NCBI RefSeq assembly: GCF_000315625.1
Contig: NW_005434673.1
Span: forward strand, 825,023 to 889,022
DNA: 64,000 bases
DNA from: Guillardia theta CCMP2712
Lineage: Eukaryota > Protista > Cryptophyta
Reading direction: 5' to 3'
The stretch's first letter is position 1, and the number at the start of each line of letters is the position of its first letter. The translations under genes were made by a program, and so were the position numbers. Under the pieces are notes generated by a model, which ran no database searches, was not told where the DNA came from, and worked only from the letters and a program-made list of their open reading frames with translations. Positions 2,206 to 61,893 of this stretch are shown piece by piece.

Positions 2206-5200
2206 CTAGAGAGGGATGTTTCCATGCTTCTTCCATGGGTTTGACAGCTGTGAGACAAGAGTGAAAGGGCTGAAGACAACAACATCACTAGCATGCTCAG
2301 CACGCCCCCACCTGCTTGTGGAGCAGCGCGTCAAGCTCCATGCACAATCTTGTACGGGTGGTGTGAGGCTCGATGACAGCATCGATGTATCCTCTCCTCG
2401 CTGCGGTCAAGGGGTTCGCAAAAAGCCTCTCGTACTTCTCCACCTCCGCCTTCGTCCTCGAGCCATCCAACCCTCGAAAAATGATGTTCACAGCACCTGC
2501 TCCCCCTTCAGTTCTCCTCCTCCTCCTCCTCCTCCTCCTCCTCCTTCGCTCTTGTCCTCCCCGCTCACCTGCTGCTCCCATCACCGCAATCTCTGAGTTG
2601 GGCCAGGCGAGGTTGATGTCTCCACGCAGATGCTTCGATGCCATCACATCATACGCTCCACCTGAGAACCAGTCACTTGCCCTCCTCTTCTCTGCGGCCA
2701 ACTGCTTTATCTCTTGCTCCACTAGGAAATCTGATTTCTTGAGGGCTTCCCTATACTGCTCGCTTCTCTTGCCGTCCTATCTTTGCCCTTCTCCTGCAAC
2801 AGCTAACCTTGCGCAGCAAATCTTCCCACCGCCTTCTGCTACTTCTTTCCACTCCTTCCTTCCCCTCCCATCTCTCCTCTGCTCTCCATCCAACGTCTTG
2901 CCTCACCATAGGCCTTGCGTGTGATAACCGTGAGCTTCGGCACTGTCGCCTCCGCGTAGGCATAGAGCAGCTTCGCGCCATTCCTGATGATGCCTCCCTG
3001 CTCTTGAGAGAGCCCAGGAAGAAATCCAGGCACATCGACCTGCAAGTCATCAGCTCAGGAGGAGTTGGGGGGAATGGTGATGGTGTTGACGATGGTGATG
3101 GGGAGGAGGAGGAGAAACTCGTGCTACCATGGTCAGGATGGGGATATTGAAGCAGTCGCAGAACCGCACGAAGCGAGCGCCTGCATGAAGAGGATGAGAG
3201 CAAGGATGAGCAAAACTTCAATTCACCTTTGACTGAGGCGTCGATGTCCAGGCAGCCTGCAAGATGCAGCGGCTGGTTGCCGACAACTCCGACGGTTCTT
3301 CCCTCAAGGCGAGCTTGCATCAACGTCATGGTCGTCATCACCTCATACACCTTCTCCTCTATCATCTCTTCCTTTTCCTCTTGCTCTTCCCCTTTCCCAT
3401 CTCTTCGTTTCAGACCCTTCCCTCTCCCACCCATCCCACATCCTCGTCATCCTCACCGAAACCGCAGATGATGTTTTGCGCGTAAGCCGGCATGATCTCG
3501 TAGAAATCGTTGTCATCAACAATCTGACGAGAATAGTGTCACAACGTGAACGTCAAACAGCGAGGAGTCATAACCTTCTTTATGATCTCATGCATGTCGT
3601 AAGGAGTGTTGGGATCATCGGGGACAATCCGACCGAGCGACAATTCCTGCGCAGGGGACATGGTCAAGTGAGATCCTTTCCTCTTACGCTTCATCCTCTG
3701 TCTCCTTCTCTTCTTCTTTCCTCACTCATCTGTTTCTCCTTCCCGCGCTCTCTCCTCCTGATCCTTTTCATCTTGCCTGCCTGTCTCGTCGATCCTGGGT
3801 GTACCTTCTCGGCGCCTAGCGAGCAAGGTTAAAAATAGTGCATGGAGATATTGTATCGAGACGAGGAGGGGAAGGCAGCAAGGCAATTTACTCCATCACC
3901 TGCTCCTTGTTGTTCAACGGAAGAAAGTTGAAGAGTCTCCTGGTCGCTTGCAGCGCGTCGATCTCGTTCTCTGCTGAGAGGTGCGCAACTCCTGAGATCT
4001 TAGTGTGCACCGCTGCTCCTCCGAGCTCCGCTGTTGTCACATCTTCATGAGTCACTGTCTTGACAACCTACACACACGTTAAGACGTAGCAGGTGACGGA
4101 GGCAAGATAGAGGGGACGAGCGAATGGAAGGGAGGGAAGAGAAACAGAGGAGAGAAGCGGATTGAGCCAGTAATCGTCATCGACCTGAGGACCAGTAATG
4201 AACAGATGCGAAGTGTTCTCAACCTGATAAAATACGCATGAGACGTTTGCGAACAGTTCGGAATCCTGCAAATGACCATGATGATGAAGTCCGTCAACGC
4301 AGGAGAGTATACAGCCCCTCCAGCACATGGTCCCATGATCACTGAGAGCTGGGGAACGACGCCTGACGCCAGCACATTCCTCTGGAAAATTTCCGCATAT
4401 CCTCCGAGGGAGTCAACTCCTTCCTGCAATGGGATGGCATGAATACCCCTGTCATCATCTCCTCCTCCTCCATTACTACTGTCTCTTCCTCTCTGTCTCA
4501 TCCTCATCCTCATCCCCGTCCTCATCCTCCTGCTCCTGCTCCTCCTCCCTCTCCTCGTTCCTACCTGGATGCGCGCTCCTCCTGAATCGTTCAGTCCGAT
4601 CACAGGTGCACCCACTCGCATGGCCTTGTCCATGATCTTCTGAATCTTCAACGAGTGGGCCTCGGACAAGCTTCCTCCCAACACGGTGAAGTCTTGGCTG
4701 AAGACGAACACAAGCCTTCCGTTGATCGCTCCTTGCCCAGTCACCACTGAATCTCCAGGGTACTTCTGCTTCTCCATGCCGAATTCCGCGCAACGGTGCT
4801 CGAGCAGCTGGTCGTACTCGATGAATGAACCCTCGTCCAGCAGGATCTCAAGACGCTCTCTGGCTGTCAATTTCCCCTTCTCATGCTGCTTGTCTATGCG
4901 CTCCTGGCCTCCTCCCTTGTATGCCTTCGCCGTCAGGGCGGCAAGCTCCTCTTTGAACTGCGCTACTCGGGATTTCGGTTGAGCAGGCAGTGACCCTTGA
5001 CTGAACCACCGACGGTTGCATCTAATCCCTACGACGAGTGACCTGCATGAACCTATCAGACAGGAAAATACATGCAGCAATGAATGAGGTCGATTCGTGC
5101 TTCAGCGTTCAGAGGACTAAGGTTTCTGCTGCACGAGTATTGCAGTGGAGAGCGACTCAAACATGATAGGAAGCAGATGATGGTTTGAACTAGCAGCCAG

Positions 5201-5454
5201 GAGAGTGCAGAGGACAGAGCCTGGTACTTTCACAGCTGGGGATGGTACAGATCCATAGAGGGATACAACACATGCAACACGGGATGCGACGAGTTGAGAG
5301 AGCATGAGGGTGGAAGAGAAGAGAAGCAGGACAAGAGGAAGGTGGAGACTGGAGGGAGGCAACAAGGGAGGAGGAGGAGGAGGAGGCGCGAGGTCAGAGG
5401 AGCTCTCTTCCGTTACCTCATCGTCGGCAGCATCACGCGCATGCGCCCCGCCAT
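2206..5454 (-). CDS. PCCB: Propionyl-CoA carboxylase beta chain (carboxyltransferase), mitochondrial, multi-exon
   Basis: Motifs [94 protein letters not shown]. Last exon [13 protein letters not shown] with stop at 2206. First exon [13 protein letters not shown] resembles a transit peptide. Confidence 0.95.
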
Positions 5455-5485
5455 GGCTGGCACTGCAACAACCCCGGCCCCACCT

Positions 5486-5612
5486 CTCAAACTTTGAACC
5501 CTTCAAGTTTCAAAGTTTTGAACCAAAGTTTGAAACTTCAATTTGATGCCGCACCCCCGGCGCCCGCCGGGCCGGGCCGCGGGGGCCGGCCCCACAGCAG
5601 CGGCCGGGCCAC
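5486..5612. promoter_or_regulatory. Putative promoter element: TTTGAA/TTCAAA cluster next to a GC-rich GGCCC/CCGGG island
   Basis: Four TTTGAA/TTCAAA hexamers in 5493-5534, followed by cccgccgggccgggccgcgggggccggcccc, immediately upstream of the PCCB ATG. Confidence 0.4.
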
Positions 5613-5805
5613 GGCAACTTGCAAGTCGGCATTCACGTTCACCATTTACTTATTCAAATACTGTGACAGGGATTATCATGCAAACTGTGACAAAAACAAC
5701 TTAGGACTGAGCAAGCCTTGAAGGAGCTAGAATACACAGACTCAAATAGATTACATCACACGATGGGCCGCAGGCTCTTGCAGCCACTTGGACATCACAG
5801 CAACT

Positions 5806-6903
5806 TCATGATGGCGTGACCTTCTGCCTTTCTGCTGCGCTCGCACCATCTTCCGACGTCAAAGGCGGCGCTCTTCTCTTCCCTGACCGAAGGAGTCCTG
5901 CAAACTCACCGATGAACTCCTTACTGTCCCACTGAACTTTCTCAGCTTTCTTTCCATCAGCCGTAATGGTGACTGCAGAGGGCGTGGAAGAGGCGGAAGA
6001 AGCTGCAGCATCTTTGAGGGCCTGATCTGCTAGCTGCAGGAGGCAATCCAAGCCATCACCTGTCACCTCTACGTCTCCATCCACGGAAGAAACAGTACCA
6101 GCGCATGCTGCGGTACTGCCCTTGCTGCCAGAAGTGAATACGATTCCTTGCTCTCCAGTCTTGTCATTGATTGTTTGGCACCTCTTCTTGATAGATTCAG
6201 CCAGCACCCCAATCGTTGCTGTTGGACCCATATGACCTCGAAGAATGGCCTGACTCAACTTTTCACCGTTCTCGATAAGCAGTTCCCTCATCAACTTCAC
6301 GGCTCTTGTCTTTGCCTGTTTACTGTAAACAAGTCAGTATCAGAAGGATTATTGTGACATATCTCACCGAAGTCTGTCCGCAGTGCCTTGATTTGTGATG
6401 TCAACACAGGAGGAGTCATACTCCATTGCAACTGCCAGATGCGGACAAAGGATGACCAGGGGAGCTGGACATTGATTCCCATGGCCGGCAATGTAGCCTT
6501 GTACAGCCTGAGAGCTTCAATGAGACCCTCAACAGCAGAAAGGCAAGACATCATACCTTGGCGTCTTCGCTATTGGAAACAAAGACTCGAAGCTTGATTT
6601 CCTCTTCTTCGACAGCTTCTTTGTGTTTTTTGGTATCAACGTTGCTCACTTTTTGAAGGGAGATTCGGATGACCTGTGGGAGAAGCGTTCAGAGCTAAGA
6701 ATCCAAAAATCGATCGAGTAGCTGAAATTTACCTGCTCCTTTGGGACCTTCGACGAAGCGTGCTGTAAACGCTCCAAGACACGATTGGGAGTGCCGGGAT
6801 CTAAGACTCCCTCCCCCACGGCAGCCACAAAAAGTCCGACGGGAAAATATGCTGCTTCACTCTGATTCCGAGCGTGATCGGATCCTCCAGAAGGATTCTC
6901 CAA
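5806..6903 (-). CDS. Hypothetical protein, probably multi-exon
   Basis: Consecutive protein-like minus-strand ORFs 6646-6903, 6297-6554 and 5806-6300 separated by intron-sized gaps. No family recognised. Confidence 0.45.
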
Positions 6904-7150
6904 TTCGCTTTGATGTTGCCTGGCACGTTCCAGAAATGCTTTCCTGCAAGAGCGATCAATCCGAGTGCCTAAAGATTGGTTTCATACCTTAGTTCGTTCT
7001 TGGCATACAGATGAGACTGAGATGCTGATGTGACACTTTGCCACTTTTCACTGAGAGCTTTACAAGCAATCGCCAAAGATCTTGCATGTCCAAGGGGATA
7101 GAGTCCAGTGTCCGTCGAAACACTCAATTTACACAAAATTCGACCCTGAA

Positions 7151-8094
7151 CTAAAGTAAGGGGAAAGGCTCAGATGCTACAAGAAAACTTACCACACAGA
7201 AGAGGTACACTAGTTTAACGACCTGGGATGCACGCTCCACCAAAAATTTCTGCTCTTGTTCAGATTTACCGCGTGTTAGTGATTCGATCATCCTTTCCCT
7301 TGCTTCGTTTGTGGGGCCACAATAAATCTTGCAATGGGTGCCGATCATAAAGTGCTCATCCGAGCCTTCGATTCGCATCTCGACCATAGAAGGAATCATG
7401 GCATCCTCCTTGCCTTTCATGAAAAGTTCAGGGTGTGCTTTCAGCGACGCAATGTGGTAATCCGCACACTCCTTCTCCGTGGGGAAAATCAATCTCATAT
7501 CTGATACACTCAAGGAGTTGCTTTTCCAGTCGCACTTTCCTACAGCAGTTCCTCGATATGTTGTAAACAGGTTGTTCTTGTCTGATACTCTGGAGGCAAA
7601 GACAGGATGCGATTCGTGCAATTTCTGCCATGAGTTGCAACCTGTTGTGGACGAAAGATCGTGATCCTGAAGCATAAGGCCACTTATTGCCCTTCTCAGA
7701 TCCGGATGGGTCTGATTATCATGGTTGTTAGAGTTCAAATGCATCATGGTATACACCAAATTCGAATTGATGTCCTGCATTGCCAACTTCGTGCACAAAT
7801 TGTTCCAAACTTCAATCTGTTCCTAGTGGCTGATCAAACACAAAATAAAGGCGCAGTTGAATAAGGGGCGTCAAGATAGTTCGATTCCGCAAGTGATCGA
7901 AGGAATACGAGCACTGATATCGACGAATTCGTCGAAAGCGGCGCCGATTGTGTCGTATCGGCTGTTTTGCACGTGCACAGCCACCTAACAGGAACGAGGA
8001 ATGCACCAAAGTCACACTCAACAGACCACGCAGATTCTGTCAAAACAGAGAATCGTATGCCAAAAGGCCTCCAAACCGAACGAAAGCGAAACAC
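7151..8094 (-). CDS. Hypothetical protein (215-aa ORF plus probable upstream exon)
   Basis: ORF 7151-7798 has globular-protein composition. No family recognised. Confidence 0.4.
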
Positions 8095-8219
8095 GAGGTC
8101 AAAGACGACGAAACTTGGGAAAACTTGGGAAATCGAGGAGCGAGATGTTTTGAAGTTCTACAAAGTCGAAGTCGGCAGGGGTTGGCTCTGACTGAGATAT
8201 GGCAGCAAGCACAGAGATA

Positions 8220-8880
8220 GTGAGAGGGGCTATCAAGAGGGAAGATTGTGGCATGCCAGCGCAGTAGGCACGGCGCCGATGCCTGCGAGCAAGTAGTTGC
8301 GAGCCATAAACAAGAGCATGAGAAGCAGGTATGAGGGGTTGTAGGTTTTTGGTGCAAAGGGAGGGTAGTCCTAATAAGGAAAATGTTTTGAGTTGGAGGA
8401 AGGGTGGTAAGCAGCGCTACAAGGGGGGTGGGGTCGTTGAAGAACAAAGGAATAATAAGAGCAAAGTCAGATGGAGGGGTCCTACTCTGGATAATTGTGG
8501 GTAGGGGTACTGCTGTCCGGTAGTTGCAGCTGGGTCAAGAGAAAACCGAGCGACTGTAACCCACCCCTTCTAAGAGTATGAAAACGTTCAGGTAAGTAGG
8601 GGTAGTACTGTCTGGTGTGGACAGGGAAGTGTGTGAGTTCCGAATCGTGACGGTGGGTAGTGTCCGAAGGTGATCTGTAGGTGGGTGGGGTAGGAGATCT
8701 CACCATGTTAGAAGTAATTGTTGTAGGGTAAAAGGAGGTAGGGTAGTCAGAAAGAAGGTAGAAGCCTCTAGGGGCTATTGAAATGTACACCTCCTAATTC
8801 AAGGCGTGGGGTAGTGGCTAGAAGGGGTGGGTATTTATGACGATAACACAGGGGTGGTGGGGCCACTTGGCCTCCAAATA
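8220..8880. other. Strand-biased G-rich non-coding tract (GGGT/GGGGTGGGT motifs)
   Basis: Many gggt/ggggtgggta runs with no credible ORF. Similar tracts at about 23125-23330 (C-rich on +), 31540-31680 and 57080-57560. Confidence 0.4.
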
Positions 8881-8963
8881 CGTTTTGAAACGATCAAGAA
8901 AAAAGAATAAATAAGTTTTGCAGGATTGATCCGTTCAAGGATTTGGCATTACCGTACTGATTC

Positions 8964-11900
8964 TTACTCGCAGCGCAGGTTCCTGTATGAGACATACCGA
9001 CTGTGTCCCTTCCCCGACGTCGCACGCATCTTGTAGTCGCACAGCGCCAGCTGCAGCTCGCACACGTGCCCCGACACCCCGACCCTCCACGTCTCGTTCG
9101 TCACCAGGCACACGTTCAAGCACACGTCCCTGTATCCCCCTGTCTGCCGGGCATCGTGGCGGCGATCGAACCTGTTCTTGACTCGGATGACTTGGAGGTC
9201 TGGATCTTCAGCAATCATCTCCAAGCACGCATGCAGCTCCTTCAGATCCTCGAACATGATGCTCTGCCTTACGATGTCCACGAGCCTCGACACGTCCCCA
9301 GCATACGCCCTCGAGAGCTTCTCTACACATCTGTCGATGCTCTTCAGTTTGGCAAAGCGCGCTTTGCCCCTCAAAGCCTCGTCTAGCTTGCAGTCCCTCC
9401 ATCGCATCGGCTTGCACCTGGCTTCGCTCGTTTCATCCTCCACCAAGCAGAAGCCTCCCGCCCTCTCTGCGAGACTCTTGACCTTGTCTAGAAACAGCGG
9501 GTCCAGCAGGAATGCCTGCATGTAGAGCTGATCAAAGCACTGGATCCGTCTCGATCGTGCTGCCTCAGTCCATCCAAGCATACCCTTCACCCCATCAAGC
9601 AGACGCATCAGCACTCCCACAGCTGTTTGACTTCGCACTACGAACCCAGCGGAGGAATACCCGAATCGAGAGCCTCGTCGGAAGCGAGACACGGCCTGGT
9701 ACTGTGACAACTGTCGCCCTACACCCAGACACTCGGTCAGTGTTGAGATCTTTTCTATACATCGCTGGCTGTCCGGATCTCGCAACAACTTCGTCGTCAG
9801 ATCGTCATAGTGCCTGCAATCTTCTGCGACGTGCTGCCATGCTCGATACAAGACGATCCTGTTGTACAGCAACCAGGCAACAAATGTGAAGATTAGGACG
9901 GGAGCGCTGCTGGGAGCTCTGAAGCCGATGCCAAGATACAACCACGAGTAAACATTGATTGCCACAGAGCTCAGACATGCATGAAACAGCAGGTAGTGCA
10001 TGACATATCTCTCTTTGAACCAGCTCGTCAGCCCCAGTCCGAAGAGCGAGCTTCCCACGATCCACCAGTAGAAGGATGACTCTATGGTGGTACACAAGAC
10101 ATGCATCACTGCCATGCAAGTCCCTATGCTTCCCAGCACGAAGTACAGGTTTACCCAAAAGAACTTCGCCGCAATCGGTCTCCGCATCCATCCCATCACA
10201 GCAGTCATGGTATAGTGGAACGATACCAACACTCCGTACAATGGAAGCATCGTTTGAAACCATGGCGGTCGATGATCGAACGCGTGGACATGGTTGCGCA
10301 ATCTGCTTGTCTTGTACTCTCGTCGTGCTAGAGGGTGACATCTTGCCGAATACATCTTCCAGTGGCACTCCGGTCCCCCGTATACTTCCCAGGCTCTGCT
10401 TGGAAGCGTCCAGGGCGCATCGGAGGGAACCGAGGAGAAGGAAAAGACAAACAACGCAGGGTCGCTCTCCTCTGTGCCGTTCTCGACACTTGTGCGAAAG
10501 AACCATCCGTTGGCAACGACCGCCTCCTCGAAAGAAGCGTACAGGGAGTTGTTGTAGCCCCAGAGCCTTGTCTTGGAGCAGTTGAGCTCGTAGCCGTTGT
10601 GAAGCAAACCGACGCTTGCAATCCCAGGGCCTCTCGGAGATTTTCCGTCCCTGGCCATCAACGTCGTGAAGCGCAGGTGGCGACTTGTGAAAGACATCTC
10701 TGCTCGAATTGTATCAGAATCTCCGCCTGGCTTGAAGATTCTCCATATCTGCACGGCCGCCTGCAATACCAAGAAAAGCTGAAGCGCAAGCTTCTGTGAG
10801 CCTAGCTTGATCGGAGCTGTCCCGAACATCACACTGCTTATGTCAGCTCGTTCCACTCCATGGCAAACATCCGCTAAGTACCTCTCCAACAGGTCACCCG
10901 GGAAGCAGCACTTCTGCCTCATCAACGCCCGGACGCGATTCTCCTCTGCTGCCATGTCGCAGGATGCAGCGTTGACAGTCTTCTCCGTGTGACCGCATGG
11001 CTCCTCGTTCCCCCATTGCTTGTCCTGCAGCGCCATGCCGCTGACCCGTTGATATGCTGACCCGTCTCCATCTCCCAACAGCTCACAGACTTGATCATAC
11101 AACACGTACGATTCGTCCTCATCTTCTTTCCAAGCTCCCAAGAAGCTCTCAAGCGCCAGCTGCAGCTCGCACACGTGCCCCGACACCCCGACCCTCCACG
11201 TCTCGTTCGTCACCAGGCACACGTTCAAGCACACGTCCCTGTATCCCCCTGTCTGCCGGGCATCGTAGTGGCGATCGAACCTGTTCTTGACTCGGATGAC
11301 TTGGAGGTCTGGATCTTTTGCTATCACTTCAATACAAGACCGGACATCTCTCAAGTCCCTGCATACCAACCTGGCGCTCACGACGTCCACGAGCCTCGAC
11401 ACGTCACCGTCGTAAGCTACAACAGCCTTCTCTACGCACCCCTCAAAGTCCTTGAGCAAGGTTCCATCCGGGGCAAGGTCTAGCGAGACTCCGTCGAGAC
11501 CCGAGCAGATCGCCTTGACCTTGCTGAGGAACTGGTCGTGCACTACGATTGCCTGCAGGAAGAGTTGGTCGAGTGACTTGACTCGGCTGTCCCTTGACTG
11601 AGCTGCCATGTATCGTGTGAAGCGCTCGCTTCCAAGGCCGTAGGCAAAGCCCTCTTCAGCCTGCCTTGTCGAGGTATGGTGCCTGTAGGTACGCCGCTGG
11701 CTTTCAAGATTGAGCTCTGAGATCGTCCGAGAGAGAGAGTCCAAGTAGGGAAGAATCTGCTCTTTGCTCTCGTCGAAGATCGATGCATATTCCTCCACGC
11801 CTTCCATGGCTACTCGCCTCGATCTCCGCTTGGTTCCCTCCCTCAGCACTAACAACAAGACCATGAAGGTCAGAGCCAGGATGGCGCTGACACTGATCCT

Positions 11901-13190
11901 TGCGGTCAGGGCAAGGGAGCAGGCGATCATGTACAACGCGCAGACGAGCATCTGCTCAAACGCGACGGCCTCGGAGATCACCGCAGGACCTGGAAAGATC
12001 ACCATCATCTGCATCAGCTCAAATCAGCTTTCACTTCGCCTGCTCATGCACAAAGCGATTCTCACCCCCAGCGCTTGCAGTGCATACAGAGCCTCGGCCG
12101 TGCTGTAGTGACCCCACTCATACCGCCAGAACAGTCCCAGATACGTCATCGACCATAAGAGGCTTCCAAGGCCCATCGCCTGCACATCCCTGATGTCAGT
12201 CCAGCATGCATCGATCAACTCATGACTCGAATCACCTTTACCGCACCTTCGTACTTCTCTGTCCGGGACAAGACCAGCGCAAGCACGATGCAGATCACTG
12301 CTACCAGGCTCCTACATGCGTCCATGTACTCCATCCACTTGCATTCCACCCCGGATAGATGCAGCTCAATCAGCTGTCTCCTCCCCTTACCGCATGTCAA
12401 GGACCCGGATCTGTCTTGGTCCTCCCTCCCCAGTCCTCTCATCACCGCACGACCGCACGCTCCTGACCTCCTCAGGTCCTTCCAGTGATGCCCGTCGCTC
12501 GACCCTTCTATCTTCAAGTCTGCTAGCCGAGCTGCCCCCCCTCCATCGGTCAAAAGGAAGTAGATCCCGTCTGTGACTGTCGCATGACGCATCGTGATGT
12601 AGCTCGCGTCTCCGTCTGGAGAGATCCTGTGTATCTGTATCCTCGACTCCGCCCGGCACACCTCAGCTCCGTCCTCAGGGGTAGGAAACAAGTGTCCTTG
12701 AGACATGACACCCCAGTCTTCTATCTCGCTCAACGATGACTTGTTGTGCACGGTAGAGACTCGGAAGTGGGAGAAAGTCTCTTGAGCAATCAAGCTCCTG
12801 ACTTGTACGAGGAGAGAGTCATGAGGATGCAGGAAGATGAAGATGAGCATCATCAAGACGAGGCCAAGCTGCGCGTGCGCGAGAGTCAATGCTGCAGAGA
12901 GCGGCTTTCTGGACACCAGTATCCTCCAAGGTCTCTTGACGTATTGATGCGAGCTTTGAGTCCTCAGCCTGCTCTGCCAGTAGTCGCCACGGCGTCTGAT
13001 CATCTCATCCATACCAAGGTGATAGAGTCTATCAAGATAAGCATGTGACCTGTCCATCTCCTTGTGGTTATTTGTCTCCTTGCAAGGCTGCACCAGGCTT
13101 GTGCCTCCTTGTCACCTTCGGCATCCACCAATGCTTTGCGGTCTCAATGGCCAACCTGCCATGGGACAGAGGCGGTTCATTCTCAACCAT
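8964..13190 (-). CDS. Multi-pass membrane protein with two RelA/SpoT-synthetase-like nucleotidyltransferase domains, copy 1
   Basis: The 1016-aa ORF (8964-12014) joins ORFs 12024-12218 and 12215-13093 through two roughly 55-bp GT-AG introns. Domain motifs LKSIDRCVEK, LVDIVR, RVKNRF, GGYRD..LN, CELQL. A 1-bp insertion near 13110 shifts the N-terminus relative to copy 2. Confidence 0.7.
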
Positions 13191-13599
13191 CACGGCGATC
13201 CTTGTGCTTCTTGTGCTGATGCGCCTTCACAGCTCCCTCCATCTATCGTCACAAAGGTTCTCTGTATTGACTGAAAAAGAAGGGCAAACCGGAGCAAACA
13301 AAGGAGGGGGAGGATAGAGTCTACAAACCCGCCTCAATAAAATACTAGGAAAAGAAAAAGGCAGCGAAAACCGCTTTAGATGTAGTCTCAGAGGTCCATG
13401 ACTCAACAACACTTCTACTGAGTGACTCCATCTCGCTGTTTCAATGACACAGAACTGAGCAACGTCTAACGAGGTTTCACAAGATTTACCAGAGCAACTT
13501 GCGTTTATTACAACCTAGGATATCATTCACTGTGGCACTTGACCATGAATTATATGTTTTGCAAACCTTTAAACCATCCAATTCAAGTTACAGCCAAAA

Positions 13600-15250
13600 T
13601 CTAAAAGCCATCAGTCTCGTTATCATTCGCATTTCAGAACCAACACTTGATCTCATCTGAACGCGTTGCTTCTTTCTTTCGCATGTTCTTGAAGTACGTT
13701 GTCTGTGCAAACTGTCGACTCCTATCACTTGAGCTCTCTGCCCCTTCTCTCTAATTGAGCCACGAGATGAAATCCTTTAGGGAATTCAGTTCCATTCCAC
13801 TTCTCCGGATGAATTGGTCAAAGAAACAGGAGATTGCAATTATTTATTGTGAATTCTAATAGTAAAGGAAATTGACGCGAAAATGCTGTAATACTTTCCT
13901 AGCAACTTCAAGGTGATACTCCTTCTTCCCGCTCGTCATTTCAGCAACTTGAGACATGTTTCTTGCTGAAAAGATTGCTCAGGGGAGCAACCGACGATGC
14001 CGAGATGAGTATTGTGTGCTCGAGTTGAGCGGTAGCAGATATTTCTAGCATGATCCAATAGGTAATTGATTTCGTTCCTTTTCTACGTTCATCTCACTCC
14101 TGTCGAGGTCCCGTTTTCGAGACCCAGCACTTCAACAGCCCATGCAACCTGCTCCAAGTGCAGGAAATTGTGATCGGCTTGAAGCGCACGACAGGTTTGA
14201 AAGATGCCTCTGATCAAACTGCTCATCCATTTCACACCATTCATATTCATATCTCATTCCGTATGCTGCCTGCTTCGAAGGCCTCATAAGTCATCCATGT
14301 CGCCATGTTGTATACACAACCTTGCGTAAGACCTTGAGCTCAGATGATCTTAGGATCACCGTTTGATAAGCACACACACACACTCACTCATCAGATCAGC
14401 AGCATGCTGTCTGGCATCGTCATCCTATTTCCCTATGCTACGTGCAAGGGGCGTCCAGTATGAGTCCAGGATACAACGCGCCTCCAGTCTTGTCAGCCTT
14501 GAGACTCGCTCGTATTCTTCCATCAAGGATATCCTCACATTGCTCATAGATCAACCCCGCTTCGACCGTCCGAGGTCGCTGGAAAGAATTTGGTGTCCTT
14601 CACTTACTGGAAAGCCTCTGTTCATGTCCTGTCGCTGCATGCCCGAAGTGCCAAAGTAACCATACGTCACCAGTCTGCCCGTCATTGTTGCCACTACTGA
14701 AGCTGCAGACTCTGACTGAGACGCAGCTGATGGAGGGCCCCTGCTCTCACCGTAATCTCTTGCCATCGATTCCATCGTGCCCTTCCCATTCATGGCTTTA
14801 TCTGCTCCGATCTCATCCTTGTTCGAATGTTGCATCCCCTTGTTCGATCGCATCCATTCCTTGCTCCATTGCACCATCAAGTTATTGTAAAACGATCCAC
14901 TGGCGCGTCATAGAAATGCAAGATATACGTAAGTGCGGATTTGTAATGACTGCAGGTTGGAAAAGAAAGATCAGGCTTGACACTCAAATAGTGTGAAATC
15001 CAGAATATCAAGTGCTGCACAGTCAACTTGTCAAGGTCTATGGATTTCGATGCCATCATCCCGGGCTACGTCTGCCTTCATGTCAGCAGACATCAGCCCC
15101 AATCGACGTCATTCGCACATGTCCATTCAATCAATCCAACCATGTAAACTCGATACAGGCAAGGGCTACGCCGGCGAAAGCGTTAATCAAATTTGCAGCT
15201 CTATCGCCCTCCAGTGCCGCAGCGTCTTGCCTTCTTGACTATTCAGCTGA
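13600..15250 (-). CDS. Possible fragmented or multi-exon hypothetical gene between the tandem duplicates
   Basis: Short minus-strand coding-like segments (e.g. LIRGIFQTCRALQADHNFLHLEQVAWAVEVLG) flanked by splice-like sites. No coherent gene model could be built. Confidence 0.2.
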
Positions 15251-15413
15251 AGCACCTGCAGAGAGCCAAGGACAACGGCTAGAGTGATCAACGTGGGCTA
15301 GCGACAAAGGTTCAAGTGGTGGCCGAACCGCCTCCCCCCTAACCCTGGTCAAGCCAGTGTCGGGTCAGCATGATAGGTCACAAAGTTTTATCATTGTTTC
15401 AGCAAGGCTAGCA

Positions 15414-18400
15414 TTACTCGCAGCGCAGGTTCCTGTAGGAGACATACCGACTGTGTCCCTTCCCTGACGTCGCACGCATCTTGTAGTCGCACAGCGCCAG
15501 CTGCAGCTCGCACACGTGCCCCGACACCCCGACCCTCCACGTCTCGTCCGTCACCAGGCACACGTTCAAGCACACGTCCCTGTATCCCCCTGTCTGCCGG
15601 GCATCGTAGCGGCGATCGAACCTGTTCTTGACTCGGATGACTTGGAGGTCTGGATCTTCAGCAATCATCTCCAAGCACGCATGCAGCTCCTTCAGATCCT
15701 CGAACATGATGCTCTGCCTTACGATGTCCACGAGCCTCGACACGTCCCCAGCATACGCCCTCGAGAGCTTCTCTACACATCTGTCGATGCTCTTCAGTTT
15801 GGCAAAGCGCGCTTTGCCCCTCAAAGCCTCGTCTAGCTTGCAGTCCCTCCATCGCATCGGCTTGCACCTGGCTTCGCTCGTTTCATCCTCCACCAAGCAG
15901 AAGCCTCCCGCCCTCTCTGCGAGACTCTTGACCTTGTCTAGAAACAGCGGGTCCAGCAGGAATGCCTGCATGTAGAGCTGATCAAAGCACTGGATCTGTC
16001 TCGATCGTGCTGCCTCAGTCCATCCAAGCATACCCTTCACCCCATCAAGCAGACGCATCAGCACTCCCACAGCTGTTTGACTTCGCACTACGAACCCAGC
16101 GGAGGAATACCCGAATCGAGAGCCTCGTCGGAAGCGAGACACGGCCTGGTACTGTGACAACTGTCGCCCTACACCCAGACACTCGGTCAGTGTTGAGATC
16201 TTTTCTATACATCGCTGGCTGTCCGGATCTCGCAACAACTTCGTCGTCAGATCGTCATAGTGCCTGCAATCTTCTGCGACGTGCTGCCATGCTCGATACA
16301 AGACGATCCTGTTGTACAGCAACCAGGCAACAAATGTGAAGATTAGGACGGGAGCGCTGCTGGGAGCTCTGAAGCCGATGCCAAGATACAACCACGAGTA
16401 AACATTGATTGCCACAGAGCTCAGACATGCATGAAACAGCAGGTAGTGCATGACATATCTCTCTTTGAACCAGCTCGTCAGCCCCAGTCCGAAGAGCGAG
16501 CTTCCCACGATCCACCAGTAGAAGGATGACTCTATGGTGGTACACAAGACATGCATCACTGCCTTGCAAAACACCATGCTCCCCAGCACGAAGTACAGGT
16601 TTACCCAAAAGAACTTCGCCGCAATCGGTCTCCGCATCCATCCCATCACAGCAGTCATGGTATAGTGGAACGATACCAAGAAACCGTATTGTATATGCAT
16701 CGTTTGAAACCATGGCGGTCGATGATCGAACGCGTGGACATGGTTGCGCAATCTGCTTGTCTTGTACTCTCGTCGTGCTAGAGGGTGACATCTTGCCGAA
16801 TACATCTTCCAGTGGCACTCCGGTCCCCCGTATACTTCCCAGGCTCTGCTTGGAAGCGTCCAGGGCGCATCGGAGGGAACCGAGGAGAAGGAAAAGACAA
16901 ACAACGCAGGGTCGCTCTCCTCTGTGCCGTTCTCGACACTTGTGCGAAAGAACCATCCGTTGGCAACGACCGCCTCCTCGAAAGAAGCGTACAGGGAGTT
17001 GTTGTAGCCCCAGAGCCTTGTCTTGGAGCAGTTGAGCTCGTAGCCGTTGTGAAGCAAACCGACGCTTGCAATCCCAGGGCCTCTCGGAGATTTTCCGTCC
17101 CTGGCCATCAACGTCGTGAAGCGCAGGTGGCGACTTGTGAAAGACATCTCTGTACAAATAGTATCCATCACTCCACTTGGCTTGAAGATTCTCCATATCT
17201 GCACGGCCGCCTGCAATACCAAGAAAAGCTGAAGCGCAAGCTTCTGTGAGCCTAGCTTGATCGGAGCTGTCCCGAACATCACACTGCTTATGTCAGCTCG
17301 TTCCACTCCATGGCAAACATCCGCTAAGTACCTCTCCAACAGGTCACCCGGGAAGCAGCACTTCTGCCTCATCAACGCCCGGACGCGATTCTCCTCTGCT
17401 GCCATGTCGCAGGATGCAGCGTTGACAGTCTTCTCCGTGTGACCGCATGGCTCCTCGTTCCCCCATTGCTTGTCCTGCAGCGCCATGCCGCTGACCCGTT
17501 GATATGTTGACCCGTCTCCATCTCCCAACAGCTCACAGACTTGATCATACAACACGTACGATTCGTCCTCATCTTCTTTCCAAGCTCCCAAGAAGCTCTC
17601 AAGCGCCAGCTGCAGCTCGCACACGTGCCCCGACACCCCGACCCTCCACGTCTCGTCCGTCACCAGGCACACGTTCAAGCACACGTCCCTGTATCCCCCT
17701 GTCTGCCGGGCATCGTAGTGGCGATCGAACCTGTTCTTGACTCGGATGACTTGGAGGTCTGGATCTTTTGCTATCACTTCAATACAAGACCGGACATCTC
17801 TCAAGTCCCTGCATACCAACCTGGTGCTCACGACGTCCACGAGCCTCGACACGTCACCGTCGTAAGCTACAACAGCCTTCTCTACGCACCCCTCAAAGTC
17901 CTTGAGCAAGGTTCCATCCGGGGCAAGGTCTAGCGAGACTCCGTCGAGACCCGAGCAGATCGCCTTGACCTTGCTGAGGAACTGGTCGTGCACTACGATT
18001 GCCTGCAGGAAGAGTTGGTCGAGTGACTTGACTCGGCTGTCCCTTGACTGAGCTGCCATGTATCGTGTGAAGCGCTCGCTTCCAAGGCCGTAGGCAAAGC
18101 CCTCTTCAGCCTGCCTTGTCGAGGTATGGTGCCTGTAGGTACGTCGCTGGCTTTCAAGATTGAGCTCTGAGATCGTCCGCGAGAGAGAGTCCAAGTAGGG
18201 AAGAATCTGCTCTTTGCTCTCGTCGAAGATCGATGCATATTCCTCCACGCCTTCCATGGCTACTCGCCTCGATCTCCGCTTGGTTCCCTCCCTCAGCACT
18301 AACAACAAGACCATGAAGGTCAGAGCCAGGATGGCGCTGACACTGATCCTTGCGGTCAGGGCAAGGGAGCAGGCGATCATGTACAACGCGCAGACGAGCA

Positions 18401-19639
18401 TCTGCTCAAACGCGACGGCCTCGGAGATCACCGCAGGACCTGGAAAGATCACCATCACCTGCATCAGCTCAAATCAGCTTTCACTTCGCCTGCTCATGCA
18501 CAAAGCGATTCTCACCCCCAGCGCTTGCAGTGCATACAAAGCCTCGGCCGTGCTGTAGTGACCCCACTCATACCGCCAGAACAGTCCCAGATACGTCATC
18601 GACCATAAGAGGCTTCCAAGGCCCATCGCCTGCACATCCTTGATGTCAGTCCAGCATGCATCGATCAACTCATGACTCGAATCACCTTTACCGCACCTTC
18701 GTACTTCTCTGTCCGGGACAAGACCAGCGCAAGCACGATGCAGATCACTGCTACCAGGCTCCTACATGCGTCCATGTACTCCATCCACTTGCATTCCACC
18801 CCGGATAGATGCAGCTCAATCAGCTGTCTCCTCCCCTTACCGCATGTCAAGGACCCGGATCTGTCTTGGTCCTCCCTCCCCAGTCCTCTCATCACCGCAC
18901 GACCGCACGCTCCTGACCTCCTCAGGTCCTTCCAGTGATGCCCGTCGCTCGACCCTTCTATCTTCAAGTCTGCTAGCCGAGCTGGCCCCCCTCCATCGGT
19001 CAACAGGAAGTAGATCCCGTCTGTGACTGTCGCATGACGCATCGTGATGTAGCTCGCGTCTCCGTCTGGAGAGATCCTGTGTATCTGTATCCTCGACTCC
19101 GCCCGGCACACCTCAGCTCCGTCCTCAGGGGTAGGAAACAAGTGTCCTTGAGACATGACACCCCAGCCTTCTATCTCGCTCAACGATGACTTGTTGTGCA
19201 CGGTAGAGACTCGGAAGTGGGAGAAAGTCTCTTGAGCAATCAAGCTCCTGACTTGTACGAGGAGAGAGTCATGAGGATGCAGGAAGATGAAGATGAGCAT
19301 CATCAAGACGAGGCCAAGCTGCGCGTGCGCGAGAGTCAATGCTGCAGAGAGCGGCTTTCTGGACACCAGTATCCTCCAAGGTCTCTTGACGTATTGATGC
19401 GAGCTTTGAGTCCTCAGCCTGCTCTGCCAGTAGTCGCCACGGCGTCTGATCATCTCATCCACGCCAAGGTGATAGAGTCTATCAAGATAAGCATGTGACC
19501 TGTCCATCTCCTTGTGGTTATTTGTCTCCTTGCAAGGCTGCACCAGGCTTCTGCCTCCTGTCACCTTCGGCCTCCACCAATGCTTTGCGGTCTCAATGGC
19601 CAACCTCCCATGGGACAGAGGCGGTTCATTCTCAACCAT
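15414..19639 (-). CDS. Multi-pass membrane protein with two RelA/SpoT-synthetase-like domains, copy 2
   Basis: Near-identical to copy 1 at offset 6450 with the same two introns. Intact N-terminus MVENEPPLSH. Confidence 0.7.
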
Positions 19640-20104
19640 CACGGCGATCCTTGTGCTTCTTGTGCTGATGCGCCTTCACTGCTCCCTCCCTCCTTCATCA
19701 TCGCCTTCTGCATTATTTGTGGCAAATAGTTTCTAGTTTTGCTTAATTCTTACTTCGGGTCGTATCTGGTCAGCAAATCCACCTCAGAGAAATCAATACC
19801 TTAAATTGATGGCAGCAAGCAAAGATATAACCAAGTTGATCTGATGCCCGCACTGTTTAAATTTATTCTGGGCCATCCGATGCCGAATCGGGCACGAGGA
19901 GGCAAACTGACTCAGTCGAGCTTGCGGACCGTATCGTGTGGGCTAGTTTTGTGGGGCACTGGGGTATCCATTGGCCCGGTTGAATCATTGCCATGGTGAG
20001 TCACTGAGGACCGTCGGGCCTCGGCCCGGTCCGAGTCGGACTGGCAGTCGCTCGCCATTCAAAATGATTCGTGGGGTAGCAAAAACGAAATTCAAACTTT
20101 GTAA

Positions 20105-23537: not shown

Positions 23538-26318
23538 ATGCGGACGGAGGGGAAGAGGTTGAGTTATACTTGAATATGGTTGAGCTCAGGTTTACTGAGT
23601 ACCTAGTCATCAGTCGATCACATAACATCAGATGTTGTTGTACCTCTTCTCCACCATCGAACCAGAGTTCGGCAGGCTAACACTGTTGCAGGGTGAGAAT
23701 AGCAAAGGTTGGACACATGGACTCGGACGACGCCTCCTTGGCAACACCGACTCTGAAGCGCAAGAGGTCAGATGACATCGAAGCCCCCAAACAAGATCAA
23801 AACCGGCGGAAGAAGGTTTGATCACCTCTAGAGATGTTGCTCTACTTGATTCGAGCGTTGCCAGTCCCGAGAAACGCTAGCGAAGGCATTTTCGCTCTCA
23901 GACTCAGGTCAAGCGCAGCAGTTCTCCACAACTGTAAGGAACTATGACTTGTTGCCTGCTCTTGCCTGCTCTTGCCTGCTCTTGCCTGCTCTTGCCTCTC
24001 CTGTCTCGATGTTGTAGCAATGGCTGCCTCATGCCCTGTTACCCAATGGCTGTATTGACGTGTGATCGCAGCTCGAGAATAGCGTGTACGAGTTCTGCAA
24101 GTCCAAGTACGGGGATGGAAGTTTTGATAAGATCAAGGCTCATTACATAGAAAGGATCAAAACCCTCAAATTTAACTTGGAGAGGAACACAGAGTTGCGG
24201 GAGAACGTGCTATCGGGGCAAATACCTCTCGATGACCTCGCAAGCATGAACTCTGCAGATCTTGCTTCCACGGATGTCAAGCAGAAGCGAGTTACAGCGG
24301 CCGAAGAGAGCTTGAAGGACAGAGTGAACAATGAGGAGGTCCAGAGGCTGAAGAATTCTGCTGAGGGTCAAACTATGAGGAAGACAGACCAGGGTTTGGT
24401 TACCGTGTCGCACGAAGCAGAGGCGGAGCAAGCTAAGAAAGAGCAGGAGGAGTACGAGAGGAAAAGGCTAGAGGAAGAGAAGAAGAAGGAGGAGGAGAGG
24501 AACAAGGCTGCATCTATCGTAGCAGCAGGGCTGAACATGGCGGAGGAGGATCAGAAGTCTTACCTCAACTCGGAGTGGAAGCCAACGTTGTCCAACATTG
24601 AGGACGACGAAGACAAGATCAAGCACAGTGTCGAGCTCTCTCCGATGCTGGAGGCCCACGTGGCGGAGCCTGTCACTCCTGACTTCGACGTGCACGCCAG
24701 TGACCCTCACAGGGAGCTAGAGATCTTCGACTTTGAGAAGGTGCCGCTGCGGCGGGTTTGGTCTGGAACGATCCGGGACACCAATCTGCACTTGAACATT
24801 GACATATCACATTATGGGGGCGTGGAGGTGCATGACTTGTTCCCGAAAGAGTTGATAGTCCGAGGGCACCTAGACCCGATCGAAGCTGAGAAGTACGTGC
24901 AGGACAAGCTTCACGATAAGAGCAAGTCTGTTGGGTTCTACAAGATCCTGATTGGTCCAGATCATGCCGGAAAAGAGTCAGTTTTGGAAAAGAAGTCATC
25001 TCTGGATAGGCAGACGAAGGCTCATGTTCTTTGTGAAATCAAGGACAAGATCATCATCTATGGCTTCTCTCAGGCAAACCACTTGTTCGACGCGATGAAC
25101 TCCGATGGCGACGAATCGATCTTGATGTTTGCAGTTGCAATTGCAACAAGACGGAAAAATCACTCGAAGAAGGTGGAGCCGATTCCGAGGCCGCCGCCTA
25201 GTCTTGACCGCAAGCTGACGAGTCCGAGGAGGGGAAACGTGTTCCAGCTCTCTTCGACCACGTTTGGAAAGATACAGACTTCCAGCTGCAGCATGCGCTT
25301 GAATCACGTCACAGGTGAGAAGAGTGTGGAGGTCATTCCCAAGGAGCTCGTGGTGTTGGAGAAGGCTGAACTTGACAGTGTGATCGAGTACCTGCTTCAG
25401 AACACGGTGACGGTGGTTGAGTTCGAGCCCGAAGGGGAGGCTGACACGGAGGCTTACTTGGACTTCTGTAAAGTTCTCCAAGAGAAGGGAAGAGCTGCAG
25501 TCGTCCTCGATACCCCATCTGTCTTGATGTACCTCATCCCTCCTGTCTCTGACGCGGGCAAGCTTCTTGATCCGCCATCCAGGAAGTGCGAATTCATGCT
25601 CGGCGTGCTGCTCTTCAGCCCTGACAGTGTAGAGCATGTCAACGAAGACGCCGGCCTTCCGAGCTCAGAGCATGCTGGTGGCCAGAGCGAGGGCTCTGCT
25701 ATGGACGTTTCGATCAAGAACGAGGGCGCGGCAGTAGCAACAATGCAAGGAGTCAACGCGCCGCAGGTGGCGTTGGGCTCTCGCTCGGGTGACATGTACA
25801 ACATGGGGTACGTGGAGGATGAGGGAGCAAGGAGGAGGTTGCCGCAGGGGAGCGACTTCGAGCCCGCTGCGTATCCTCCTCCCATGCCTCACCGTCCTCC
25901 TCAGCACTCTGAGCCCTTTAGCGAGAGCCGCTGGGACGGCATGGGAAGGAGCGAGTGGGGGCCTGCTGGGGCTGCTCCGCCTCTGTACGGGCAGGAATTG
26001 GAGCCGCGAGAGCCCTTCCGTGCTCCCCGCATGATGGAAGATCCTCTCCCCTCCTACGAGGAGCACGTGAGAATCAGACCGTCCTCCGACCCTCCCGCCC
26101 CGTACTACCGCGAGGGAGCATGGGGAGCGAGTCAGCCCCCTTATGACCAGCGGGAGCTCGCCAATCCAGGTCGGTACCCTGGTTTTCAGCCGCCTCCTGT
26201 CATGCCGCATGCTGCTGTCCCCCGGTGGAACTCGATGCCCGGGCAACCGTCATGGGACCAATACGGAGGAAGGGGAAGAGGATACCGAGGGCCCATGCGC
26301 CCCTACCCCCCGCAGTAG
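23538..26318 (+). CDS. TFIIS central domain + SPOC domain protein (PHF3/DIDO/Bye1-like)
   Basis: YIERIKTLKFNL..N.ELRENVLSGQI..DDLASMNSADLAS is TFIIS_M. VWSGTI.. and ..KGRAAVV....LMYLIPP....FMLGVLL look like two SPOC domains. Pro/Gly/Arg-rich tail. The 744-aa terminal exon is 24084-26318; the start is approximate. Confidence 0.8.
23955..23996 (+). repeat. Intronic 10-bp tandem repeat (gcctgctctt) x4
   Basis: Directly visible. Confidence 0.85.
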
Positions 26319-54364: not shown

Positions 54365-54698
54365 GCGCTTCACGTGCAGAGTACCCGTGGTCAGTGAGGA
54401 GATGAGGGTCCTTGTCTCCAAGAGCCTGAGAGTGCGGGCCCGTACCGTACGGACCGCGGCGATCGGATCGGACAGTGAGGCCCGGCGGGCCGGGGCCAGG
54501 CAGCTCTGCGGATCGGATCGTTGGCCGGGCCGCGAGACGCCGGACGAATCAAGGCATGAGGATGCGGGCCTCAGTAACTCAGTTGGGTACAACTTGAGAT
54601 GAAAGTTCATTCCGACTGTCAAGTTCACTGTGACAGCCGAACTTCGGAAGTTGGGCCTTGGCCCGGCGGCCTCAAGTACGGTAGCCAGAGACGGATCC

Positions 54699-61100: not shown

Positions 61101-61893
61101 CATGTCTGATAGCTTACAAGATGGCGGCCATGCGCGAGGGTACTCGCCGCACAACATCTCGGTTGACATCACGTTCCACGGATGTTCGAGGATGCGATCA
61201 CCCGTGGCTTTCAGGGACTTTGTGAGGAAGGAGCTTGCGAGGTACGAGATCATCAAACCACTTGGATTCATCTTCAAGTACTTCCTGTACAAGTTGGGGC
61301 TCAACGATGCGTACACTGGAGGGCTGAGCTCGCACTCTGCCATTCTTCTCCTCATCTTCTACTTCAACCTCGAGGAAGTTTCCAAGGCCTACACTGAGTC
61401 GAAAATCCCGGGAAGCTCTCAAGAGATCCCTGCGGACTGCAAGTACGGCGAGTGGCTCCTCCGCTTCTTCCAGTGGGTTGCAGAGTTTCCGTACAAGCAC
61501 GTCGGAATCAGCTTCGGCATTGGAGATCATGGAGTGACCCCTTATTTCATTTCCGTCTCCAACTTCGGGCAGGGGCTGATCAAGCTCAGGCAGTACGATC
61601 CGTCCTTACCCGAGGATCCTGACGACAGCAAGGGGACTTTCGATAGGCTCTTCATCGGTGACCCCACTGACGTCTCGATCAATGTTGCCAACTCTTCCTT
61701 CCAGTGGTTCCTCGTTCAGTTGTCCATCCAGGGCGCCTTCAAGGTTCTATCCGACCACCAGGATACAGCTCCTCACCTGCGGATCTATGGGGGGGTCTCA
61801 GAGTCGCCTTCTCCCTTGCAGAACATCTTCGACCCGGCAGTGGTACAGGCTGCTGGCAAGTTGAGGATGGCGGCCAAGAATGCACCCAGATGA
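58131..61893 (+). CDS. Non-canonical poly(A) polymerase / terminal nucleotidyltransferase (TRF4/PAPD5/TENT4-like) with long N-terminal extension
   Basis: RLHSEI, VEVYGSFSTDLYLPHSDVDVLV (GS..DxD), VPVIKL, VDITF, LNDAYTGGLSSH, G..LLRFF, LFIGDP..N. Upstream exons at 58131-59620. Confidence 0.88.

Follow-up and report, generated by a model that had tools for sequence, protein, structure and literature searches.

The tandem gene pair and its transcripts

The window analysed here, 64,000 nucleotides (nt) of nuclear DNA from the cryptophyte alga Guillardia theta CCMP2712, contains two tandem gene copies on the minus strand, located at 8964-13240 (copy 1, the GUITHDRAFT_160451 locus) and 15414-19689 (copy 2, GUITHDRAFT_99165). 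Both copies consist of three exons, and they are 98.9% identical over 4280 nt. Each encodes a predicted membrane protein of about 1,326-1,370 residues, depending on the start, which is built as a doubled module comprising a transmembrane (TM) helix, a beta-sandwich ectodomain, five further TM helices, a helical linker and a domain resembling the synthetases among RelA/SpoT homologues (RSH), with twelve TM helices in total. The evidence leans, by a small measure, towards a twelve-helix receptor-type synthetase of a nucleotide messenger, in which the C-terminal RSH-like domain would be an active pyrophosphokinase.

The large open reading frames (ORFs) of the two copies, 8964-12014 and 15414-18464, span 1016 residues each and are accompanied by upstream ORFs at 12215-13093 and 18665-19642. 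Both 1016-residue ORFs are intact, and an interpretation of the copies as pseudogenes was therefore rejected. The large ORF of copy 1 is 98% identical to the GUITHDRAFT_99165 protein (P0001, 1370 residues), and its residues 395-750, which cover the region of module 2, are 100% identical to the GUITHDRAFT_160451 protein (P0002). In copy 1, exon 1 (12236-13057) was delimited from the ORF. It begins at the first in-frame ATG that stays open (MDRSH...) and encodes the predicted cytosolic N-terminus, TM1, ectodomain 1 (about 12326-12814) and TM2. Intron 1 (12180-12235, 56 nt, GTGATT...CAG) and exon 2 (12066-12179, 38 codons, the third TM helix of module 1) were assigned by homology with copy 2, and intron 2 (12009-12065, 57 nt, GTGAGA...CAG) from its sequence and from the removal of its copy-2 homologue in transcripts. 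Exon 3 (8964-12008, stop codon included) was assigned from the ORF, with its start placed by homology, and comprises the last TM helices of module 1, RSH-like domain 1, module 2 and RSH-like domain 2.

The ATG at 13057 and 19507 is a start common to both copies and gives a protein of 1,326 residues. Relative to copy 2 (at about 19560), copy 1 carries one extra A near 13110, and as a result the frame from the annotated upstream ATG at 13190 is closed by a TAA at 13070-13068. In GenBank, copy 1 is modelled as a protein of 999 residues from which RSH-like domain 1 and the C-terminus are spliced out despite the intact ORF, probably in error. For copy 2, the GenBank model agrees with the transcript-based structure.

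Transcript contigs from three runs (X1, X2 and X3) belonging to three studies, as well as RNA reads, were placed on copy 2. Transcript-sized contigs cover 15629-19721 with 0-1 mismatches and skip exactly 18459-18515 (57 nt) and 18630-18685 (56 nt), where CT..AC on the plus strand corresponds to GT..AG on the gene strand. Both joints are present in contigs of all three runs, and the two short introns which a sequence-only reading of the window had proposed are thus directly visible in copy 2 and follow by homology in copy 1. Accordingly, copy 2 consists of exon 1 (18686-19639, with the annotated start at 19639, the alternative ATG at 19507 and transcript contigs reaching 19721), intron 1 (18630-18685), exon 2 (18516-18629, matched by contig pieces at 18512-18628 with an ambiguity of 1-5 nt), intron 2 (18459-18515) and exon 3 (15414-18458, stop codon included, covered by contigs at 15629-18454). 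Exon 3 holds RSH-like domain 1 at about 17547-18059 and RSH-like domain 2 at 15417-16016. The large exon shows no further splicing, which indicates that both RSH-like domains are present in the mRNA. The contig ends at about 15629 and at 17738-17767 coincide with the position of the internal repeat, and the raw RNA reads (2026 run) concentrate at the 3' end of copy 2 (15378-15541). Run X3 additionally contains a minor alternative joint at 18437-18514, which skips 76 nt and has a depth of 23.6 compared with 2238.9 for the main joint. The possibility of bacterial contamination, or of a recent transfer without expression, was rejected because the GT..AG introns are removed in transcripts and the neighbouring genes are ordinary eukaryotic ones.

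Fold and active site of the RSH-like domains

The resemblance of these domains to RelA/SpoT synthetases is far above chance. The whole protein matches the Pfam family RelA_SpoT (PF04607) in two stretches with 35.4 bits, compared with a gathering score of 27, at E 1.5e-8. A family profile built from 87 relatives and searched against sequences found Tas1 as the best match (E 1.4e-4), and also RelP. The structural evidence comes from RSH-like domain 2, which in copy 1 occupies ORF residues 817-1016 (8967-9566), carries the complete family signature and forms the C-terminus of the protein. The AlphaFold2 model of this C-terminal domain, computed from the alignment of the 87 relatives, reached a predicted local distance difference test score (pLDDT) of 91.3 and a predicted template-modelling score (pTM) of 0.86. 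The best 50 Foldseek matches in the PDB were all RSH synthetases (best E 1.9e-6), among them RelP, RelQ, an exported synthetase, CapRel, Tas1, RelA, Rel and FaRel2. In VIA-align, the best 11 matches were likewise all RSH proteins, with Z scores of 8.2-13.6 (13.6 for BsRelP, 12.4 for SaRelP, 12.0 for RelQ, 11.9 for Tas1, and 11.8 for Rel and CapRel), and the next fold, that of RsfS-type proteins, followed at Z 6.8. The likeness to RelA/SpoT synthetases claimed in the sequence-only reading was thereby recovered at the level of Pfam, profile and fold, and all of the motifs quoted there (FSHFRVSTV, DGIYFL, IEGSSDGHHW, SRHLRFTTL, ANGWFFRT, LKSIDRCVEK, RVKNRF, GGYRDVCLN and CELQL) are present. A Pfam scan of ten further family members revealed no additional domains.

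Residues were mapped through hidden Markov model alignments to RelP, with published roles taken from SaRelP and FaRel2, and are given in the domain numbering of the family. In the C-terminal domains of the 87 relatives, which share 30-48% identity, eight positions are invariant (K92, R96, K100, D114, R117, R163, E187 and R212) and 21 are nearly invariant. K92, K100 and R103 are the counterparts of SaRelP K80, K88 and R91, which bind the ATP phosphates, D114 and E187 are those of D107 and E174, which bind Mg2+, and Y162 is that of Y151 in the G-loop, which stacks on the acceptor base (PMC5794853). Q189 corresponds to FaRel2 Q147, which coordinates the donor adenine and is one of the FaRel2 residues with published roles onto which the conserved positions map (K66, K74, R77, D90, Y128, E145 and Q147; PMC11782079). 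H205 is probably the equivalent of SaRelP H190, a ribose contact, and R96 occupies the position of the alpha-phosphate Ser of RelP. The donor-site motif K-S-x-x-R-A-x-x-K...Y-x-G-D...D-x-x-R is common to the algal family and Tas1, together with a moved Arg described below, and basic residues near the G-loop are kept (R145, K147, R149, R163 and R212). Judged from this conservation, the C-terminal domain looks like an active pyrophosphokinase with a donor site of the Tas1 type, and the catalytic motifs noticed in the first inspection of the sequence correspond here to conserved catalytic and ATP-binding residues.

The two domains of one protein are unequal. RSH-like domain 1, delimited with the family profile by hmmsearch (in copy 1, ORF residues about 136-306, 11097-11609), is partly degenerate, with the signature LKGEKVDSRRKNGYRNHEQDY- compared with KKREKRDRSRKNGYRNHEQHYR in the family. 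In both window genes it is without R96, R103, R117, H205 and R212, five positions conserved in the family, and it keeps K92, K100, D114, Y162, E187 and Q189. The same tendency was seen in 30 two-domain relatives. Of 19 signature positions, an average of 18.7 is kept by their C-terminal domains and 14.2 by their N-terminal domains, a comparison that is descriptive, given the relatedness of the proteins and a profile derived mostly from C-terminal domains. The N-terminal domain kept fewer signature positions than the C-terminal one in 29 of these 30 proteins. R103 is found in 8 of the 30 N-terminal domains, the acceptor Tyr and the Gln in 13 each, and the Asp and Glu for Mg2+ in 29-30. The expectation of two RSH-like domains thus held as far as their presence is concerned, and it has to be amended with respect to their equivalence. 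With the Mg2+/ATP core kept and several basic residues lost, RSH-like domain 1 probably has a regulatory or partner role.

The losses in RSH-like domain 1, together with the family-wide replacement of several canonical RSH motif residues, could also mean that both domains are pseudoenzymes, which would bind ATP or an alarmone-like ligand and regulate a transporter- or channel-like membrane part. The six-helix bundle does resemble small transporter and channel bundles at low Z (8.6 for TMEM45A, 7.2 for a succinate-acetate permease and 7.2 for a urea channel). However, K92, K100, R103, D114, Y162, E187 and Q189 are invariant or nearly so in the C-terminal domains of the 87 relatives, as expected of an active site, and two pseudoenzymes are regarded as an improbable explanation.

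Within each copy, DNA identity between the two RSH-like domains is 96-97% in their second halves and 60% in their first halves. The identity of third codon positions jumps from 37% to 95% at about ORF residue 232. Tracts of gene conversion were delimited by DNA identity at 9043-9224 (domain 2) and 11152-11332 (the partner in domain 1) in copy 1, and at 15493-15674 and 17602-17782 in copy 2. Domain 2 of one copy and domain 1 of the other are 95.6-96.2% identical over 182 nt. ORF residues 270 and 973 are both Asn in copy 1 and both Asp in copy 2, which indicates that conversion between the domains continued after the copies had diverged. A tree of 48 domains groups the N-terminal domain of a protein or orthologue group with its C-terminal counterpart, examples being P0004, P0016, P0017, P0178 and P0028, with Shimodaira-Hasegawa-like approximate likelihood ratio test (SH-aLRT) values of 97-100. 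Independent internal duplications were rejected as the cause of this clustering, since the modules are only 15-17% identical and third-position identity changes abruptly, and gene conversion is favoured for the same reasons.

Over the large exon the two copies differ at 37 of 3048 nt, with 20 non-synonymous and 7 synonymous codon changes and no insertions or deletions. As many as 26 of the 37 differences fall into three patches (ORF codons 430-438, 590-595 and 628-634) at the borders of ectodomain 2 and in TM3. Micro-conversion from other paralogues or local diversifying selection could be the cause. Homology of the two copies breaks off precisely at the stop codon (8964 and 15414), beyond which the 3' flanks are unrelated, and on the 5' side it ends about 50 nt upstream of the annotated ATG (at about 13240 and 19689), with unrelated promoters. 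As homology ends at both borders of the coding part, the flanks have diverged while the coding part was kept alike, which fits an older duplication with a homogenised coding part.

Predicted topology and cellular setting

The architecture of the membrane part was derived from an AlphaFold2 model of module 2 (window 9615-10862, pLDDT 87.2, pTM 0.75) and a hydropathy scan. Within one module, a TM helix is followed by a beta-sandwich of about 140 residues, five TM helices of which the last is extended as a long helix, two further helices and the RSH-like domain. In copy 1, the first TM helix of the module corresponds to ORF residues 409-427 (10734-10790; helix 25-43 of model m062fc5776d80), ectodomain 2 to residues 428-589 (10248-10733; strands within 58-196, pLDDT mostly above 90), and the five TM helices to residues 590-730 (9825-10247; helices 206-225, 229-257, 261-282, 284-310 and 320-361), the last of them continuing into a long, presumably cytosolic helix. 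Module 1 can be aligned with module 2 over its full length at the identity of 15-17% given above. The twice-repeated module of TM helices and ectodomain proposed from the sequence was therefore found again in the model and in the hydropathy profile. The "several" helices placed there after the ectodomain are present as well, and their count can now be fixed at five, hence six per module.

The charges of the loops obey the positive-inside rule, with MRR and K facing the same side as the N-terminus and the putative enzyme domain, and TTI and GIGFRAPSS on the ectodomain side. Ectodomain 2 contains three N-x-S/T sequons and a Cys pair conserved in the family. Taken together, the loop charges, the sequons and the Cys pair suggest that the ectodomains face outward or into a lumen and that both RSH-like domains lie in the cytosol. 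The predicted topology is thus cytosolic, not extracellular, for the putative enzyme, and the membrane and ectodomain part may gate it upon a cue from outside the cytosol.

As for the nature of such a cue, ectodomain 1 matches the Pfam family F5_F8_type_C weakly (E 0.025-0.044, 14-15 bits compared with a gathering score of 28.2). Ectodomain 2 gave a weak match in VIA-align to the carbohydrate-binding-type accessory domain of a galactanase (Z 6.8, root-mean-square deviation (rmsd) 2.4 Å over 92 residues) and, in the structure atlas, to an F5/8 type C cluster (template-modelling score 0.47 over 91 residues). The likeness to discoidin and galactose-binding folds, which had been suggested as a search target, is weak in Pfam, VIA-align and the atlas. 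The best Foldseek match of module 2 in the PDB was a C2 domain (E 0.03), and the atlas gave no usable match to the whole module.

By eye and by hydropathy, no N-terminal signal peptide was found in the GUITHDRAFT_99165 protein. Its first hydrophobic segment comprises residues 102-125 and is preceded by hydrophilic sequence, and counted from the alternative start the first hydrophobic stretch lies at about residue 58. Moreover, a Pfam search (E<=0.1 to 1) revealed no HD, TGS or ACT domain in this protein or in the ORFs of the window. Both results agree with the statements of the sequence-only reading that neither a plastid-targeting presequence nor an HD hydrolase is evident. The plastid enzymes RSH1-4/CRSH are, like the proteins described here, nuclear-encoded members of the RSH superfamily in photosynthetic eukaryotes, but they are targeted to plastids and possess TGS/ACT or EF-hand regions and an HD hydrolase domain, intact or as a remnant. 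A canonical plastid RSH was therefore rejected.

An organellar explanation can still be framed more loosely, with the proteins acting as (p)ppGpp synthetases in a plastid or periplastid membrane, that is, as unusual members of the plastid stringent response. G. theta has a complex plastid with several membranes, and an internal signal anchor could enter the endomembrane route used by cryptophyte plastid proteins. The characterised RSHs of plants and algae act in plastids (reviewed in PMC10107265). The missing N-terminal hydrophobic signal peptide and the missing HD, TGS and ACT domains do not fit such a role, nor does the family member of Cryptomonas paramecium (P0308), a non-photosynthetic species, although its plastid is retained. 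An organellar synthetase is accordingly considered very improbable, and a receptor-type protein with cytosolic RSH-like domains is preferred.

Family distribution, known systems and interpretation

The C-terminal 217 residues served as query in an exhaustive HMMER search, which yielded 2015 cluster representatives at E<=1e-3, 116 of them reaching E<=1e-30. The family is both large and constrained. In most of the 2015 representatives the RSH-like domain lies at the extreme C-terminus. The named members are all cryptophyte except for one entry from a dinoflagellate transcriptome, and the rest are plankton metagenome contigs. Six cryptophyte genera are represented, namely Guillardia (at least nine genes), Hanusia, Rhodomonas, Hemiselmis, Chroomonas and Cryptomonas. 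Some paralogues bear the automatic UniProt name 'RelA/SpoT domain-containing protein'. A homologue search with the membrane and ectodomain part alone returned the two proteins of the window and a Hanusia orthologue, and nothing else. The dinoflagellate entry (P0260, Dinoflagellata sp. MGD transcriptome) could be derived from prey or contamination.

One relative was found on a Tara Oceans contig of 59 kb (L001), where at 3492-8885 an RSH-like protein of 294 residues (P0238) follows an ORF of 1341 residues and two small ORFs. The contig is eukaryotic, with cNMP-binding, FKBP and ML domains and a CAD-like CPSase/GATase product of 2374 residues. The locus probably represents a single large gene with introns from a marine picoeukaryote.

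Among characterised proteins, RelP and RelQ (SAS1/SAS2; PDB 6FGK, 6EWZ and 5DEC) share the synthetase fold with the algal domain (Z 12.0-13.6 over 147-152 aligned residues), and their ATP-phosphate lysines and arginine, both Mg2+ carboxylates, the G-Y-R of the G-loop and E-x-Q all have algal counterparts. The sequence identity, however, amounts to 16-18%. RelP and RelQ are free tetrameric proteins of 200 residues, whereas the algal domain occurs twice in a membrane chain of 1,326-1,370 residues. Being embedded in a multi-pass protein, it falls outside the class of small alarmone synthetases, which are stand-alone proteins of about 200-300 residues.

Tas1/Apk1 (PDB 6OX6), a type VI effector of Pseudomonas aeruginosa with (p)ppApp synthetase activity, is closer in several respects. 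Besides being the best profile match, it shows the lowest rmsd (2.3 Å over 144 residues) and the highest identity (24%) of the structural matches, and the stretch K-S-x-E-R-A-x-x-K...Y-K-G-D...D-x-x-R-x-x-I of the donor site is found in both. The significant sequence alignment is nevertheless confined to the first half of the domain, and Tas1 is secreted by a bacterium as a toxin and paired with an immunity protein, whereas the algal domain is fused to eukaryotic membrane modules. This similarity, and the presence of CapRel and FaRel2 among the structural matches, raise the question of whether the family consists of effectors of the toxic small alarmone synthetase (toxSAS) type, that is, of receptor-triggered switches for defence or cell death which would stop translation or growth upon attack by viruses or other attackers. 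The expansion to at least nine paralogues in G. theta, the combination of variable sensors with a constant effector, which is the pattern of immune receptor families, and the concentration of differences between the tandem copies in three short patches at or near the ectodomain would all be in line with such a function. Regarding the acceptor, alarmone synthetases have a large basic patch at this site and FaRel2 a smaller one (PMC11782079). The invariant basic residues near the G-loop (R145, K147, R149, R163 and R212) fit a nucleotide acceptor better, and the search for an immunity or antitoxin partner that is usual for bacterial systems is inapplicable in a eukaryote. A toxin-type effector is therefore judged unlikely, though less so than the pseudoenzyme or organellar explanations, and a synthetase of a nucleotide messenger is retained as the preferred reading.

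In its layout, the algal protein recalls the membrane adenylyl cyclases of animals, class III enzymes with the order 6TM-C1-6TM-C2 and two unequal catalytic domains, one of them degenerate. Both have two six-helix cassettes, each followed by a (in the algal protein, predicted) cytosolic nucleotide-converting domain, and one degenerate domain. This is an analogy of layout alone, without homology, since the algal fold is that of RSH nucleotidyltransferases and no Pfam cyclase domain was found in the GUITHDRAFT_99165 protein or the ORFs of the window. Unlike the animal cyclases, the algal protein also has a large ectodomain between TM1 and TM2. Divergent RSHs with a synthetase domain only ('divRel') have been described from fungi, Dictyostelium and diatoms, with transfer from bacteria suggested as their origin (Atkinson, Tenson and Hauryliuk 2011, PMC3153485). 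The earlier statement that characterised eukaryotic RSHs are plastid-targeted has to be qualified accordingly. Compared by description, the divRel proteins are similar in being uncharacterised products of nuclear eukaryotic genes with a divergent synthetase domain and no hydrolase domain. The paper on them predates the G. theta genome and does not contain the word 'transmembrane' (PMC3153485). A literature search found nothing that joins Guillardia, RelA SpoT and ppGpp, and no description of a membrane receptor-like RSH protein. The receptor-like membrane architecture is best regarded as new within the RSH synthetase family.

RSH pyrophosphokinases take the beta-gamma pyrophosphate from ATP and attach it to an acceptor at the 3'-OH. 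In the proposed mechanism, ATP-dependent activity of this kind most likely resides in the C-terminal RSH-like domain, as conserved residues and the model suggest, and its acceptor would most likely be a purine nucleotide, so that a product resembling (p)ppApp or (p)ppGpp would result. A more specific version of this proposal is put forward tentatively, with somewhat less than an even chance. According to it, the genes constitute a cryptophyte family of receptor-type alarmone synthetases, which would produce a 3'-pyrophosphorylated nucleotide messenger ((p)ppApp, (p)ppGpp or a related compound) in the cytosol under the gate of an extracellular sensor, with the degenerate twin domain as regulator.

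Several observations weigh against the preferred interpretation. One RSH-like domain taken alone scores 21.5 bits, below the PF04607 cut-off of 27, and 12 of the 87 relatives match PF04607 at E<=0.01, which together indicate that the family is very divergent. Across the family, other residues take the place of H in GYxSxH, of RT in ExQxRT and of D in RxKD, and the position of R in DxxGxR has moved, with the adenine-stacking Arg at D+3 and not at D+5. The acceptor cannot be deduced from sequence, and RSHs that modify tRNA are not separated from those that modify nucleotides by a clear sequence signature (Kurata et al.). The predicted topology is based on a model and the positive-inside rule. 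Neither ectodomain gave a significant match to a known ligand-binding domain in Pfam, Foldseek against the PDB, VIA-align or the atlas, and the TM bundle matches only generic helical bundles in VIA-align. In addition, expression is established for copy 2 alone, and the members of the family are known from sequences and predicted models only.

RSH enzymes are familiar in three settings, as bacterial stress regulators, as bacterial toxins and as plastid enzymes of plants and algae. If the proposal is correct, a cytosolic, receptor-coupled RSH would bring alarmone-type nucleotides into the signal transduction or defence of eukaryotes, and would constitute a signalling parallel to receptor cyclases built from a bacterial enzyme of the stringent response or of toxins. 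G. theta may in that case convert outside cues into an alarmone-type nucleotide signal outside the plastid. There is also a report of ppGpp in animal cells, where the hydrolase Mesh1 occurs but no synthetase is known (PMC7666150). The genes described here are algal, not animal, and show that eukaryotic membrane proteins can harbour very divergent RSH synthetase domains, most of which escape Pfam. The C-terminal domain is compact and well modelled and has clear candidate catalytic residues, which makes the family directly testable.

The neighbouring genes of the window include those for a carboxyl transferase (4079-5080), a TFIIS-M/SPOC protein (24084-26318) and a DEAD-box/GUCT helicase (52232-54742). 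An unrelated nucleotidyltransferase gene is located on the plus strand at 59626-61893, and its product is of the poly(A)-polymerase/TENT-like type, with an MTPAP-like central domain and NTP_transf_2.

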